Positions 34,756 through 43,000 of a stretch of DNA of 64,000 nt are shown one piece after another; position 1 is the first letter of the stretch; the number at the start of each line of letters is the position of its first letter. Position numbers and translations under genes: made by a program. The stretch spans positions 1 through 64,000 of the forward strand of contig DF237155.1 of assembly GCA_000708835.1 (NCBI GenBank), written 5' to 3'. The stretch comes from Klebsormidium nitens. Its lineage: Eukaryota > Plantae > Klebsormidiophyceae. Under the pieces are notes generated by a model. The model ran no database searches. It had not been told where the DNA came from and saw nothing but the letters and a program-made list of their open reading frames with translations.

Positions 34756-35399
34756 CGCGCACCACCACCAAAAACCTCCTTCAGTAAGCTCCTCTCCTTT
34801 CTCAGCAATGCAGAACACTGCCCAACCTAGACGTGTGGACTTGGGGTGACCGCCGCTCCAATGCTCCTGGGGTCTTGAGGTCACAGAAATGTTCCGTGTT
34901 CACAAGCCCGAATTTTAACTCACAGTGCACACATGCTCTCATTTCAAGGAAGAGTTGAAAAGCTGGCCCGATCGATATGTGGCACTGCGTCAGTAGCAGA
35001 GATCTGAGATCTGGGATTCTGTTTGCCCACGCTTCTTTGCTGCGTCGATAGTCCGCACCGGGCGCCGGAGAGGGTGGTGCTTCGATTCCGATTCCATTGA
35101 GCGCCTAGTTCTGCAATCGGGCTTCTAAAACTCCACTGTCCAGACAGAAAGAGGAAGTCGATAGGCTCCGCTAGTGCACGACCAGCAACCAGCTCAGGCT
35201 GCTTCCATTTGGGCTCCCACAATGGCCGCATGACAACACCCTCGCAACATTCATTTGACGCTCCATATCAGTGGTGGTTTAGAAGTCTTGCAGAAGAACA
35301 ACACATAGCCCTCGATCCACCTCGATCTCGGGGCTGGACCAATGCGGGGCTCTTAAGCGACATATTTGAGGTTTTCAGAGAGTGTCCGCTTTTCTTACA

Positions 35400-38300
35400 A
35401 TGGACCTACGCGCAGCACTCTTTCTGCTGGCAGTGATCCCCATTTTGACGGTGAAGGCTTATAGTGGTAATGGTACCAACTTCTGCAAGGCAGCGGGGTT
35501 CGCTGAGGCGGACTGCATTGCTGACCTGGAGAGTTACGCCACACAGGCGTCGTCTAAGCACCAGCCGTACTACCACAAGTCGATGCTGCCCTATCACGCT
35601 TGGAATCACGCCTTCCAGTATGGCCACAGTGCCCGGATGTTCCTGAAGAAGTACGGGGGCGTAGATCTGAACGCGTCCCTGTTTGATGAGGCCATTGCGC
35701 TGGCGGGCTTCTTCCACGACATTGGGTATCCCATGGTCATGGGCTTCAATGGCTACAGCATGAAGCAGGTATGGATTTACTACTAAGTACTAGCTTTTAA
35801 GCTATCTGGGCTACATTCTCAGTGAGCAGGTGGGTAGGTCGCTTGACTGCATAAATTGCTGCGAGGTTCATGACGAATCCTCACGGAAGCACTTAGGTGG
35901 GAGAAAGTGACGTTTTGAGATCGTGGTCAAGCGTCAGATCTTCAATCCTTACTTTCACGGTGGGTGTCGATGTACTTGGCCTCACCTACAGGATGTATTT
36001 GATCGAAAGTGTGTGCCTCAAAAAGATGATTCTGGGTTCAGAGAATACTGTATAACATCATCTGGCTGCAAATTCTTCAAAAGGTTTCCCTTCACCTCCA
36101 AACCCTTTGTTTGTTTTGATGAGTTCGAATGATTTGAAGCCCTTTCGCCCTCGCGGCCAGAATAAAAAGTCCAAATGCACTCCGTTTGTCGGCTGGCTTG
36201 AAAAGCTTAGGCAAGTGTGGCACTTTGCTCGCCAGACTACGCCAGATTGCAAAGTGTGGCAGCTATTCAGCGTCTCGGATATCAAGCGCCGCTCTGCTTT
36301 TTCCCAGTCCTATCCATAGTGGTTCTAGTCAGGCCTTTTTCCTCTTCTGCTGATTTGCGGCTGCATGGCCACACTTTCCAAATTGTGAACTTCCACTTCT
36401 GAACAAGTCAACCCGGTTTATCGCTCTGACGGTCTCAATTTTCTCGTCAGGTGTGGGCCCCTTGTAAGACCCCCCACCCGATCCCCCGCGCCGGCCCTGG
36501 CGCCCTTGGCCGTTACGACATCTATGGGACCCACTGCATTGGGAACACCTTTGGACGCATCCCCTTATACCGAGAAGGGCACGAGTCGTACTCGCTCAAG
36601 CTGTACCTCGAGACCTTTGCGACCAACGAACCAGAACTGCCCCCCCAGTTTCTGGAACTCCGGGAACCCCGCTACATGATCCTCACTGCGCTAAACATCG
36701 CTTGCTCAAAGTGGAACGCGACGGAAGGGACGGGGGCTGAGGAGGCGCTCCTCGAGCTGAGTGCGGGGTACCCTTTGGCGGCCGATTTGGAGATCAATGT
36801 TGAGACGTGTGAGACCAGCCCGCTGAGACCAGACATGGCGCTCGGCCAGGTGAACGACAAGTGGCGGCAAATCCTGAACTGCGTGAGGGACAATCTGGAG
36901 CAGATTAATGGTTTCTCCCGAACCAGCCTGGCATGTAGTGCGGCGCGATACGCCGACTTTGCGAACGTGTTTCAGGAGGGGTTCATCTGTTACACGACAA
37001 ACCTGTGGGCTGAGTATGCCACGTATGGGGGGGCAAGAGCCAACTCGGAGCATACTGCTCCAGACCCGAGCAAGGACGGGGTTCTAGGACAGGAGCAGTA
37101 CTTCTTCTGGAACAACGAGGTGCGCTTCATCAAGGAGATCACAGGTGAGACTAGCTGACGCAGACCGCTGGTGTCCAGTAATTAGTGGGTATCTCTATTG
37201 AAACAATCTACCCATAGTCTGATTGATGAAAGATTTGGTAGACTGAGGTGTTCGCGCAAGGAAGTTCCCTCATAACCACTTCATCGGTACAACAGGTTCT
37301 GCAGGTTCTTCTTTCCACACCGAAAGCAGCACCCTCCGTTGAAATCTAGAGCCCTCAGCCCGTAGAATCGCAGAATGGCTGAGTGACGACCAAGAATTTC
37401 GCCGTCCAAATTTTGACGTCGAAAAACGAACGCTCAGGATCTTTCGTATGTACTTGGTTAGGTCCGGTTTGTCCGAACCTACTATCGGAACCTGTCCTGC
37501 CAAGGCTTCCGACCCCTGTCTAAACCCTGCAGACTGGAGTCCTATATTGAGATCGGATGGTAGCGCTGCGCTTTCTTCCAGCAAAGTTTTGCGGTCCGCC
37601 TGTCAGAACGGATGGAAGGAGAACGCGGACTGCAGTTTGCAGTCCGAGACCCCCACACCGGATGGTACTGTTCAGTTTGCGCGCGTGGGATTGATGCAAG
37701 GCTAGCTGGCCACGCGCGCGACCTAGCATGCCCATAACGTAACTCAAAGCCTGCTGCTGACCGACCAGCCCGACTTCCACCGAGCGCTCGAATGCAGTCA
37801 TTTAGCCCTGGCACCATGCTCCCAGTTGCCGAACAAACGACCCGGTGACCCGGAATGTACGGTAACCAGCTTAAATTGACTTGCGGGTGCAGGGTACCAA
37901 CCGGTGTGGGGGTCCAGAAAGGAGAACTGGAGTCCACGTTCTCCTTCCATGCGTTCTGTCAGACGGTGCTCTCGTTCTTGCCTTCCCTCAACTGCGTCCC
38001 CATTCTGCCACAGAGGAGTACGTTGTGGGCCCCGACTTCCAGCCGCTCAACGGGCGCTACACCCCGGATGACGTTGCGAGCATCAAGAAGGCGCTCGCAG
38101 ACACGGTGGTCATTCGCGACCGCGTAAACCAACTGTACGCGTCTGCGCCCAACGGCTCGTCCGTCTACCTGAGCGACATCCATGCGCTAGAGGCCATCCC
38201 GCTCTTTGAGACTAGCTGCAACTTCGTGGATTATGCATACCGGACACGGCAACTAATGGGTGAGTTGTGCTTCGTGATGTGGGTTTGTTTGTTAACTAGC

Positions 38301-38952
38301 AAGACTGGATCGAGTGATTTTGCGGGGCTCGGGCTAGTGGCATGGACATTTGTTCTGTCCAGGATCGTGTCTTTGATGGGCCCGGCGCTTGTGAACAGAG
38401 GGGCGTCTCTTCACAGGGCCCACCTCCCCGCTTTGCAGTTCTCTGTAGGAACCCAGGCTTGGATTTCGTCGCATAAACGGATACCAAATTCTTATGATTG
38501 AACGCTTCATGGTGGCTCATACTTACGTCATGCTCGGTGCGGTCTCCCCGATTGTGACATCTTCGTTTCTTCTCTCTTTGCTCCACGGCTCTTTTCCTGC
38601 AAAGCGAGTCTTGGCTCAGATACTTTCACCTTGCTTTCTGTGCTTCACGGCTTCCTGCAAACCGAGTCTCTGCTCAGACACTTCCCTCTGGCGCTTCGCT
38701 CCAGGTCTCGCCGCGTACCTCCCGATGTGGGCGGCAGCCGCGCACCTGCAGGCGCAGGACGCTCTCCAGACGAGCCCCGTGATCTGGACCCTCGTCGCGT
38801 TTGCGGTCACGATCACCGCGGGCCTGCTGATTCTGGTCGTGTATCGCTTCGCGACGACCAAGAAGGGCAAGGCGCAGGGGTTGCGAGACAAGCTGCAGGA
38901 GATGGAGATGCTCGTCAAAAAGCCGGCGCGGGAAGCCTCGCACTCGGTCTAG
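35400..38952 (+). CDS. Type I membrane protein with a luminal/extracellular HD/PDEase-like metal-dependent phosphohydrolase domain (about 518 aa, 4 exons)
   Basis: Phase-compatible exons 35400..35768, 36451..37144, 38014..38259 and 38705..38952 total 1557 nt. Signal peptide MDLRAALFLLAVIPILTVKA. HD-type motifs LPYHAWNHAF, LAGFFHDIGYP and ARYADFAN. C-terminal TM VIWTLVAFAVTITAGLLILVVY followed by a basic tail. Confidence 0.75.
37606..37956. mobile_element. MITE-like non-autonomous element, copy 1 (351 bp), in intron 2 of the HD-domain gene
   Basis: Imperfect TIRs of about 65 bp (GAACGGATGGAAGGAGAACGCGGACT...GACCCCCACACCGG..GTAC and its reverse complement at the right end). Flanked by a direct TGTCA on both sides (37601-37605, 37957-37961). 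Near-identical to 60657..61007. Confidence 0.85.
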
Positions 38953-40078
38953 AAGCGGTGTCTGGTGTTGGTAAGAGTATTGTTGTGACAGCTCGCGGGT
39001 TGGAGAACGAGTCTCCCATGAGCCAGGGGGACTTGAACGAAGCCGTTGTCCAGATGTCAGACTAAGACCGTCCATTCGCTTATTTATAACCGGTTATCAA
39101 ATGCAGGACGTATTGTGTATCATATTTACAGAAGGCAGGGGCCGCCTTCTAATTGAGTTAGGAAACGTATCAGTGTTGAAGCCAGTGCTTTGAAGAGTTT
39201 GTTTCCGTAAGCAGACAGTTCAGTGACACTCCTTGATGACAAAGCTGGCCACCCTGCGGTCTGGCCTGGGCTTATCGTCCTGAAAATCTACAGTCTGAAA
39301 GCTTCGGCACTCGTGCTCGGTATACTTCTTGCAGTACCCATTCATAAACTTTTCGTCGTCCGGCCATGTGCATAAGTCCATGTGATTTCCGGACTCATAA
39401 GAAGCCGGTTCTGAGCTGCATCAGACAATTTCAAAATCACCTTGGCATCAAATCAGGCTTCAGTGCTCGAACATATGCTGCACTACGCATGTCAGTACCA
39501 TTGCCCTGAGCATGTGGATTTCTAAAGTTTTTAATGACAAGTCATGCGGCGGCCGCGAGTCTCAGAAAAATATAGAGCTGCCGGAAAAATGATCACATGT
39601 GCCGTATATTTGTCTATAGGGCCTATCGCTCGCATATTGCTGCATGCGCACGTGGTTTACAACTGGCACACGTATACGCGCGCCGTGCATGATATCTTAG
39701 TATACAAACGGTTGCATCATGCGCTTCCAAGGACATGCCACCGTCTTTTCTGCAGCTCTAGGCGGCTGGCTTACATACGTCAGTAAGTATGTACGTTTTG
39801 CCTGGCCGGCCTGTATACGTGCCTTAGCATGTGCTGAACGAGTCTGTTGATGCATATGACAATCGTCGTTAAGCAGACCTCTTTGGCCCTGCAAACGCAT
39901 CATGCACTCCCTCCTGATCGACCTCACGACCTTTCTCTTCGTTGTGCCTTGGTCAAGGCCAGCTTCTGTGTCCAAAACCTGTGCACTTCAATCGTCCATT
40001 ATAGGTGTCAAAATATTAAGTATGCGACCGAGTCTATATAAGATACAATGAGAGGACAACACGGGGATGCCCCTGCCG

Positions 40079-43000
40079 TCATCTGAGATCGAGGACCTCC
40101 ACTCCTAGTTGCGCGTCCATCTTCACATGCCCCGCCTGTTCGTAGATTGGGCTCCCGTCGGGGGGGTTGTCGTGAGGGTGAAAACCCCGCCGTTGACAGT
40201 TCCCAACCACTTTCAAGCCCCCCGGGTCCGACAGCCTAAAAACGCCGTACTTTCGTTGACTATCTGTGGGGGCGCAAACTATGGCGATAGCCTCTGGGGA
40301 CATCACCTGTGGGCATGAAACAAGGGGCCGGTCAGAAAAACCGGCCGATGGAATAGACGCCTCATGCTCAAGCGGCGCACTCTCTGCCAACGCTTGCAAC
40401 CGACGCCTGACAGCATGACCCTCGGATGCCGTTTTGAGCTTATAAGCGGATAAAGTCGCCTGCACATACCCAAGGCGCTCGTCCTTCCAATCGAGCTGTA
40501 CCTGGCAACAGTACATGACGTCAATTGAAAGAGGTGACTTCTCGTCTAGATGCAATATCAGACACAGCAGCTAAGGCAGTACTGCATTTGGCCTCAACAG
40601 GCCCCAAAACTTCCACCCGCCCAGATTACGCCCCTGAGAAGCCCTAAAACCCGAAAAGCAGCCTCCTGGCTTGCGTTCAAAGATAAGATGCTCGCACACG
40701 AGCTGATAGAAGCGAGCTCGGCTCTGCAAAACGCAACAATCACAGACTCTTGGCGGGCATCTCTATTCAGTCGAGTCGTGCCGGCGCGTTTGCGCACCTG
40801 GTACGAGTAGTGCGTGTGCAGGTCGATGGAGGACATGAAGCAGGTCTGCGTGGGGTGCGTGTGGATCCAGCCCAGCTGGAACAGCCCGCGCGCGTCTTGC
40901 GCCTCAAAGATCTCCTCCTCGTTGATGGTGCTGCACGAGTCGCTGGTGGCCTCCTGCTTGGGCACCACCAGCGTGCTGATCGTGAACACGCCCCGCGACA
41001 GCGTGCCTGCCAACACCGCGCACGTCTCCAGGTTCTTGCGCGTGTTCGCCTGGGCCACCCTGCACAGCGGACGGCCGGCGCGTGTTAGCGGTGAGGCCCG
41101 AACTGCTCGAATGGAGAAGAGGTCTGTGCAGCAAACGGGCTCGCAATAGCGACAAACAACGACACGGCTTGCACCCATAGAGAACACAGGCATGTCACAC
41201 AACTTGCTCCTAGGAGGAGGTTGGTTTGAAGCGTGACTGGAAGTGGCTCAGAAACGGGGTAAGGATCCTTTCAAAGAACTGAAGTGGGGCCACGTCCAAA
41301 CCAAAACTTCAAGAAAGGTAGCATGCTTTCTTTCTGGAAGAACGGCAGCCTCAAACACTGTGCAAGCGTCGTAAGAAATGGCCCCTCTAAAACTAGCGCT
41401 CAGTCCGCCTCGCTCGTTCCGTCTCGAGCATTCATCCTCTGCTTTCTGCCTCTTGCAGGTTCCAGCGCGAGCCAACGCCCACATGGCGACTTCCCGTCAC
41501 GCATGGAGCAGTTGGAAACAGGCAGCCACAAAATGCTCAAGCGATGGTTAAACTTGTTCGGGTAACAGAATCCCTGCAATTGGCATACCTGAGGAACTCT
41601 TCCAGGATGCGGTGCGAAAAGTGCACCGGCTTGGGCCCCTTGAGGTCGTCAAACTCGACGGGGGGCCCGGGCCGGGGGTCGGCCACGTCGTGGGGGGACG
41701 GCTGGGGGGAGTCGACGGGCTGCGCGATCTGGAGCCGCGTGCACGGGGACGGTCTACCGGGGGGGGGCTGGGGCTGGGGGGTGAGGGGGACCTCGGGGGC
41801 CATGTCGAGGGGCTGCAGGGCAACGAGGGGGTCAGAAAGTGGTCGTAGTACGTAAACATGCCGAGTTGAAGTGGTCAGCTGAGCGTACTAAGAGGACAGG
41901 CATATTGGTAAGAGAAAGGTAACGCTCTGGTGTCCTCCTGGCACGGTCCCTGGCCTTTCTCGGCTGTCTCAATCTCAAAAGACCACTGCAAGTCCTCACA
42001 AACTGAACTCACGACGAGCAGATACTATTAGAGAAGAAGTCTTTCCTCAATCGACCGCGGCTGGCAAGGAAAGCCAGCGCGTAATCTAGGATTTAAGTGA
42101 TCAACAAAACGGGGTAGGGACCTTCAATATGGGTCATTTTCGGCTTACCAGGGCGGGCTTGGGTTGTTGCAGCTCCATAACACTCGGGGTAGAGGACCCC
42201 GAGGACGACGGCCGCTCCTCCAGGCGGAGGTTTAACAGGTCGGGGACAGTCACTGGGGACGAATCAATCGCACTGGGGTATGACACCTGCGGAAAAATCA
42301 GAAGAGGGCTAAGCGAAGGCTGACCCCGTAGCGATCTCTGATTGCATGCCAAACGTCAGGGCCAGAAGGCTAGGAGAGTCTTTTTCCAGAGTTGAAATTG
42401 AGGCTAGCAGAAATGAAGTCCTTCCTGCAGCAATTCGAACTGTTTGTGGCGATCCGTTCCGCCTCCAACGTCCATATTACAATAATGCGAACTCAAGTAC
42501 CTCTCTGGTCAAATCATGGCCGCCTTTGACCCAACTGCACAAAACCCCGTTCTTTGACCACTGCAAAAAGCTGGTGCAGAGCTACTACGACAACGTATCA
42601 ACATGCAACCTCAGAGAGGCCCTACCTTTTGTGGCAGTACTTCGTGATGCGGTCGCTGCCTCTGGGCGGGCAGCCCAAGGAAGGAGTGCCGCGAGAGCGT
42701 TTCTTCACGGGCGGGGAGGTACGAGCTGTATGACGTGGAGGTGGACATGGAAGAGTAGCTGGGGGTGAAACTAGCGTAGTTTGGTGCGTAACTGGTGGAC
42801 GTGCTGGCCGAGTAGCCGGTGTAGCTCGGGACGGTTCCCGTAAGGAGGTCCATCTGGCCGGAGGGAGGACGGGAGACGTATGCGCCAGCTGGCTGCGGAA
42901 ACAACGAGAAGAGAATGGCGGGTTAGCAATTACTTGAGTTCATTGTCCAGAGAGACCATGATAAAGTAGAAAGCCTCCCGGTGGGGGTTGGACTCGCTGC

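Follow-up and report, generated by a model that had tools for sequence, protein, structure and literature searches.

A predicted type I membrane protein with an HD/PDEase-like segment at the start of its ectodomain, encoded by an expressed four-exon gene of Klebsormidium nitens

The window analyzed here, i.e., the 64,000 nucleotides at positions 1 to 64,000 (forward strand) of contig DF237155.1 from Klebsormidium nitens (assembly GCA_000708835.1), harbours a gene at 35400-38952 whose predicted product combines (i) an N-terminal signal peptide, (ii) a large ectodomain starting with sequence motifs of the HD/PDEase superfamily of metal-dependent phosphohydrolases (PDE, phosphodiesterase), and (iii) a single C-terminal transmembrane (TM) helix (Table 1). 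In an earlier note on this DNA, the gene was read as coding for an HD/PDEase-like hydrolase with its catalytic domain facing the lumen or the outside of the cell. Library, fold and homology searches were conducted with exon-wise pieces or with the spliced contig of a relative (L003, see below), and full-length analyses were run by script.

Transcript evidence stems from Logan contigs of four runs from four studies, compared with window positions 35200-39100; the runs carry two organism labels and are identical in sequence. Each run provides a contig of ~2.1 kb (or its pieces) from which exactly the three modelled introns are missing, the junctions 35768/36451, 37144/38014 and 38259/38705 all being present in spliced form. 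Word depth in the four runs amounts to 23-360 in exons versus 0-50 in introns. This is the pattern expected of RNA, and it shows transcription and splicing of the gene according to the model. The transcript is unbroken from about 35200 to 35768 and then joined to 36451, which corresponds to a 5' untranslated region (UTR) of ~190-260 nt contiguous with exon 1 and to no splice upstream of it in the transcript contigs. According to the list of open reading frames (ORFs), an in-frame stop lies upstream, and no other in-frame ATG separates it from the one at 35400. The earlier reading was to fall if the real transcript lacked the signal-peptide exon; in all four runs, exon 1 is part of the transcript and directly continues the 5' UTR. 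The locus is a real, expressed and spliced four-exon gene.

Table 1 Features of the gene and of its predicted product (positions in the window)
Feature	Position	Strand	Residues and remarks
Whole gene	35400-38952	+	four exons, three GT..AG introns; spliced ORF of 1557 nt = 518 aa
Exon 1	35400..35768	+	residues 1-123; start codon, signal peptide, N-terminal Cys pair, H-x3-H, HD
Predicted cleavable signal peptide	35400..35459	+	residues 1-20; V-K-A at -3..-1; Kyte-Doolittle value of core 1.5-1.8
Sequon N24 (NGT)	35469..35477	+	conserved in orthologue
HD/PDEase-like segment	35589..35732	+	residues 64-111; PYHAWNHA...FFHDIGYP (H66, H70, H106, D107)
Sequon N91 (NAS)	35670..35678	+	EAS in orthologue, not conserved
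Exon 2	36451..37144	+	residues 124-354 and base 1 of codon 355; Cys-containing loop, REGHE, YADFAN
Sequon N212 (NAT)	36715..36723	+	conserved in orthologue
YADFAN	36949..36966	+	residues 290-295; candidate last Asp ligand D292; conserved in orthologue
Exon 3	38014..38259	+	remainder of codon 355, residues 356-436, base 1 of codon 437
Sequon N401 (NGS)	38151..38159	+	conserved in orthologue
Exon 4	38705..38952	+	remainder of codon 437, residues 438-518, stop codon; juxtamembrane helix, TM helix, cytosolic tail
TM helix	38779..38844	+	residues 462-483; Kyte-Doolittle value up to 2.43 over 19 residues
Cytosolic tail	38845..38949	+	residues 484-518 (35 aa); KKGK at 38860-38871, EMEMLV at 38899-38916

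A complete orthologous gene of the same four-exon structure is present on metagenomic contigs (L001 and L002). The two proteins share 81.7 % sequence identity at a non-synonymous divergence (dN) of 0.113 and a synonymous divergence (dS) of 1.44 (dN/dS 0.079), i.e., the gene is under strong purifying selection between clearly separated lineages. Identity differs along the protein, with 35 % in the signal peptide, 86 % in the ectodomain (90 % in the H..HD segment), 85 % across exon 3, 96 % in the juxtamembrane helix, 61 % in the TM helix and 71 % in the tail. All 10 cysteines as well as H66, H70, H106, D107, H167 and D292 are invariant. From the same relative, a spliced metatranscript contig (L003) with exons 1 and 2 joined covers the first 229 residues. 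An exhaustive HMMER search of 1.84 billion cluster representatives with exon 2 returned a 256-aa metagenomic ORF (84 % identical) as its sole match, and this ORF is part of the orthologue. Neither word-indexed queries (exon 1; the joined N-terminal 208 aa) nor a scan of metagenome loci revealed anything beyond the clade of the orthologue, and a scan of bacterial and archaeal genomes with six peptide patterns yielded no homologue. The family, as represented in public data, is thus restricted to a single narrow clade. Matches obtained by tblastn against plasmids and phages were chance matches only; the one from Azospirillum (H1/L004) is GC-rich, non-HD sequence and was discarded.

The membrane topology was called from hydropathy, the -3/-1 rule and the conservation pattern, and is to this extent heuristic. 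The signal-peptide-like N-terminus has a 13-residue hydrophobic core followed by ...TVKA/YSGNG; it diverges freely between the two species up to the predicted cut, while the residues directly after the cut are conserved. Besides the N-terminus, residues 462-483 form the sole hydrophobic stretch of the protein. Their hydrophobicity is retained in the orthologue, and they are directly followed by R484 and then TTKKGK in a positive-inside pattern. The divergence of both hydrophobic segments is typical for signal peptides and TM helices, respectively. All 10 cysteines (an even number) and all sequons fall between these two segments. Together, these features support well the assignment as a single-pass membrane glycoprotein of type I whose large domain is predicted to be luminal or extracellular, and gene and topology taken together can be regarded with high confidence. 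In this respect the earlier note is supported: the signal peptide (LTVKA/YS), the single C-terminal TM helix with KKGK and the four sequons (NGT, NAS, NAT and NGS) are all found in the spliced protein, three of the four sequons are kept in the orthologue, the "several cysteines" are ten, all of them invariant and in the ectodomain, and the supposed orientation of the large domain towards lumen or outside agrees with the type I features and the conservation pattern.

Within the tail, the sequence KLQEMEMLVKKP is identical in the orthologue. The fully conserved EMEMLV fits the acidic dileucine-like form [DE]xxxL[LIV] and may represent an adaptor-binding sorting signal directing the protein towards endosomal or vacuolar traffic. 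At the mature N-terminus, residues 26-47 (35475-35540) comprise a FCxxAGxxExDCxxD motif. Similarity to the two repeats of the fungal Cellophane-induced protein 1 (PDB 2lht) is non-significant (E about 0.08-0.24), and the motif may fold into a short helical hairpin stapled by disulfides.

The similarity to HD/PDEase proteins resides in PYHAWNHA (residues 64-71) and AGFFHDIGYP (residues 102-111). YHAWNHA fits the class I PDE signature YHNxxHA, and its fixed spacing to the HD dyad is kept, H70 and H106 being 36 residues apart; in an alignment with PDE5, YHxWxHAF and HDxxxP are in register. Pfam profiles match the window protein weakly with PDEase_I (E 0.010-0.016), HDOD (E 0.011-0.017) and HD (E 0.018-0.027, with values of 0.015-0.04 on residues 69-115), all below threshold; over all pieces searched, the three profiles range from E 0.01 to 0.06 and are suggestive only. 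These matches belong to one clan, cover the same residues and are reproduced by the orthologue, and that with PDEase_I places residues 65-111 without gaps onto profile positions 1-47. For the same segment, the PADLOC library provides a Cas3 HD protein (E 0.012) and the PHROGs library a phage "phosphohydrolase" (E 0.22) as their sole matches. Both libraries were built separately, so that these HD-superfamily matches count against chance.

A custom hidden Markov model (HMM) was built from 89 PDEs, including a bacterial class I PDE (L013) recovered by motif scan. With this model, the two real proteins (window and relative) score 12.4 and 13.3 bits over their whole length, compared to a maximum of 4.4 bits in 2000 composition-matched shuffles. 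Restricting the profile to its N-terminal 48 residues ranks the two real proteins first and second, at 20 bits versus 10.9 bits for the best of 3000 shuffles. Alignment to the PDE HMM by hhalign extends over 48 columns (residues 64-111) with a probability of 86 % and a P-value of 5e-6. Nearest neighbours of exon 1 alone in protein-language-model space are HD-type clusters (score 0.88). With the joined 208 aa, these are Npun_R2479-like clusters (0.94/0.92/0.92, sharing 175-183 of 256 features), followed by HD-CE, PDEase_I and HD clusters.

Several observations weigh against an HD/PDE-type enzyme. Every profile match stays under the curated threshold and spans only ~48 residues, dominated by the motif already picked out by eye; even joining exons 1 and 2 does not take the aligned region past residue ~111-115. 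Tyr stands in place of the second His in HDxxH, HDIGYP being read in both species, as had already been pointed out for the window protein. With sub-profiles for the post-HD region, the ExHH motif and the D-motif, the real protein ranks 353-665 and the orthologue 261-284 among 1112-1282 scored sequences (3000 shuffles). Thus, from the originally proposed H...HD...D constellation, PYHAWNHA and HD stand well above shuffles, but YADFAN as a counterpart of ADxSN does not: its similarity to the D-motif sub-profile of PDEs is no better than that of shuffles, and no final Asp ligand is identified. Other acidic residues, e.g., in REGHE (residues 164-168), are equally possible as candidate ligands. Exon 2 has no match in Pfam, NCBIfam or among PDB sequences and belongs to no detectable family. 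The NCBIfam search yielded one irrelevant weak match only (pyrD_sub2, E 0.21), and the PDB sequence searches gave matches at noise level. In the atlas search that gave the language-model neighbours of the joined 208 aa, just five of the ten best named matches are flagged as members of the top match's family or clan. The AlphaFold2 models are unusable, with a predicted local distance difference test (pLDDT) score of 32 for exon 2 and of 45 for the N-terminal 208 aa, since only two or three near-identical sequences are available; searches with the pLDDT 45 model (Foldseek/PDB, ESM Atlas shape search, VIA-wide) retrieved unrelated low-score matches only and were not used as evidence. Finally, conservation is judged from two closely related species-level lineages only, and that of single residues therefore says little. 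A scan of prokaryotic genomes for YHxWxHA and HD separated by 34 residues returned 35 matches, which equals chance expectation, two of them being real PDE genes. Other metal sites considered for the motifs, i.e., a tyrosinase-type CuB site, S1/P1 nuclease or zinc phospholipase C, and an HExxH zincin, were dismissed, as the motifs misfit by eye and profile matches were not obtained.

Could the resemblance be coincidental? A lineage-specific secreted fold unrelated to HD, in which H-x3-H...HD arose by chance or serves as another metal site, would account for the exclusively sub-threshold database matches, for the similar strength of unrelated ones (BIR, E 0.27; EccA1, E 0.04; dihydroorotase, E 0.24), for the lack of homologues beyond one clade and for the lack of a usable fold model. 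However, the P-value of about 3-5e-6 for a single PDE comparison translates into an estimated <0.1 such proteins per proteome (~17,000 proteins assumed), the alignment needs no gaps and keeps the H-to-H distance of 36 residues typical of PDEs, profile libraries compiled separately yield HD-superfamily matches, and in language-model space HD/PDEase clusters are nearest, with a score rising from 0.88 to 0.94 on adding sequence. Convergence thus appears improbable, and an HD-superfamily origin of the start of the ectodomain is likely, as judged from this sequence evidence. Only marginally better placed than convergence, and likewise improbable, is an HD-derived protein devoid of catalysis, i.e., a pseudoenzyme or a ligand- or metal-binding module (e.g., of a sorting receptor or a wall-associated/adhesion protein) which kept H..HD for binding. 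Such relatives of HD proteins exist, HDOD is among the equally weak Pfam matches, and loss of the second His in HDxxH together with the recognition of the first two motif elements alone, the remaining canonical catalytic domain being undetectable, would be in accord with it. On the other hand, H66, H70, H106 and D107 are all intact in a segment that is among the best conserved (90 %), and degenerate domains of the HDOD type usually lose these residues.

The opposite extreme, a true class I 3',5'-cyclic-nucleotide PDE degrading extracellular cAMP or cGMP outside the cell in the manner of Dictyostelium PDE4, is very unlikely. The fit of YHxWxHA to the class I signature with identical spacing to HD would agree with it, and an extracellular class I PDE is already on record (PMC11988041). 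However, the protein reaches 15-16 bits compared to a Pfam gathering score of 24.8, HDxxH is missing, and the regions of ExHH, ATD and ADxSN as well as the C-terminal helices are indistinguishable from shuffles. Moreover, the HD dyad and the candidate Asp are 185 aa apart, contrasting 113 aa between the HD Asp and the AADIGN Asp of the bacterial PDE (P0007/L013). The HDxxHxG motif is lacking and similarity over the whole domain stays below threshold; since these two features define the class I PDE family, the protein falls outside it.

Compared to class I PDEs (PF00233; e.g., PDE5 or bacterial L013), the window protein shares PYHxWxHA, the HD dyad 36 residues further on and an ungapped alignment over the first 47-49 profile positions. 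It differs by Tyr in place of the second His, by the lack of detectable similarity over the remaining ~190 profile positions, and by possessing a signal peptide and a C-terminal TM anchor instead of cytosolic regulatory domains. With the HD phosphohydrolases (PF01966), it shares H...HD with HDIG, which is found in many HD enzymes of bacteria, and is set apart from them by large Cys-containing insertions, a predicted location in the secretory pathway and the lack of an identified terminal Asp. Npun_R2479-like or "HD/PDEase domain-containing" proteins (PF28239) and HD-CE proteins (PF24391) are nearest by language-model features of the N-terminal 208 aa, a comparison made by embedding alone. They are ~170-190 aa long and thus near the size of this region, but are bacterial and soluble. 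Literature searches retrieved no described green-lineage protein with signal peptide, HD-like domain and TM anchor, and we know of none with this architecture.

The sole described precedent found for the topology is PDE4 of Dictyostelium discoideum (DdPDE4; PMC11988041, citing Bader et al. 2006). This class I PDE is bound to the membrane with its catalytic domain outside the cell; it is highly similar to human PDE8 and was modelled with two TM segments. Both proteins would hold an HD/PDE-type domain outside the cell on a membrane anchor; DdPDE4, however, is a bona fide class I PDE, while the window protein is of type I and PDE-like at the level of motifs only. The statement of the earlier note that HD enzymes are typically cytosolic is fair, but in view of the extracellular catalytic domain of DdPDE4 (PMC11988041), an outward-facing topology is rare rather than unprecedented.

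The best overall explanation, to which we assign a probability of roughly 0.55, is a lineage-restricted, membrane-anchored protein of HD-superfamily descent that faces the lumen or the outside and is probably a metal-dependent phosphohydrolase rather than a canonical class I PDE. The signal peptide would be cleaved, leaving an ectodomain of ~440 aa that is probably disulfide-bonded and N-glycosylated, and the one TM helix would be followed by the 35-aa cytosolic tail with its possible dileucine sorting signal. At its start, the ectodomain would descend from the HD/PDEase superfamily and retain H66 as equivalent of the general-acid His of class I PDEs as well as H70, H106 and D107 as equivalents of three metal ligands; most likely it would bind one or two divalent metals. 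The remainder of the ectodomain would represent lineage-specific, Cys-rich sequence. Hydrolysis of phosphoesters or phosphodiesters could proceed on the non-cytosolic side, i.e., at the cell surface/wall space or in the endosomal/vacuolar lumen. Such an active phosphoesterase is the leading mechanism at somewhat less than even odds, because H66, H70, H106 and D107 are intact and lie in a segment that is among the best conserved of a protein under strong constraint. The analysis establishes the gene model, its transcription, purifying selection, the topology features and the HD/PDE similarity at motif level; fold, metal binding, catalysis, substrate and compartment are all inferred, and so is the ecto-phosphodiesterase or nucleotidase activity proposed in the earlier note. 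The most far-reaching version, i.e., the first secretory-pathway enzyme of the HD/PDEase superfamily in the green lineage, a type I, taxonomically restricted ecto- or vacuolar-luminal metallo-phosphohydrolase that degrades nucleotides (cyclic, 2',3'-cyclic or linear) outside the cell or in a lumen, is a tentative and rather doubtful proposal.

Further observations concern the gene and its surroundings. Three upstream ATGs lie within the transcribed leader (35222-35436), opening upstream ORFs (uORFs) of 3 codons at 35222 (strong context), of 68 codons from 35230 (overlapping the main ATG out of frame) and of 4 codons at 35342; the leader of the relative contains uORFs too, but none of them is conserved. 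Intron 2 carries an inverted repeat (37596-37668/37894-37966) with arms of 73 nt, 82 % complementary and 225 nt apart. Transcript contigs of low depth are also more numerous in this intron than in intron 1, and one run has a loose end at 37601. The repeat could be an insertion resembling a miniature inverted-repeat transposable element (MITE), a hairpin RNA or a retained-intron signal. In intron 3, a tandem-like direct repeat (38594-38634/38652-38692; 41 nt, 80 % identical, spacing 58 nt) is located just 5' of the acceptor of exon 4. In the relative, the spliced contig L003 shows a 1-nt frameshift near 1008 inside exon 2 compared to the genomic contigs L001/L002 and a stop at the exon 2/3 junction (1385-1390), which likely reflects either a variant transcript or an error of assembly. 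A gene of the JAB/MPN+ (JAMM) metalloprotease type follows downstream, on the opposite strand, in the window (40594-41202, minus strand) and in the relative (L001, 9969-10262); local synteny is therefore conserved on the downstream side.

Two PDE loci from metagenome-assembled genomes (MAGs) are worth recording. That on L013 (3039-4076), from an uncultured bacterium, encodes a complete 345-aa class I, i.e., eukaryote-type, cyclic-nucleotide PDE, and dozens of related PF00233 proteins of ~320 aa occur in metagenomes and MAGs, one of them labelled SAR324. Bacterial class I PDEs are seldom discussed. A PDE5/6/11-like exon on a contig binned as Nitrospirales (L033, 3108-4781), flanked by (CA)n-/(CACT)n-type microsatellites and with introns, looks like animal genomic contamination of the MAG and was set aside unused.

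Domains of the HD and class I PDE types almost always reside in the cytosol, and the known extracellular nucleotide-processing enzymes of plants and algae employ other folds, i.e., those of apyrases, purple acid phosphatases, NPPs, S1/P1 nucleases and RNase T2. The gene described here is strongly constrained, well expressed and lineage-restricted, and the sole recognizable part of its product is a catalytic signature of 48 residues; structure-based annotation could therefore be tested well on this protein. If the proposed reading is true, an outward-facing HD-type hydrolase in an alga of the green lineage would constitute a new enzyme class for extracellular nucleotide metabolism or signalling and, after Dictyostelium PDE4, a second, independent PDE-like domain exported to the cell surface. 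A streptophyte-type alga would thereby have gained the termination of extracellular nucleotide signals or the scavenging of phosphate on an otherwise cytosolic fold.

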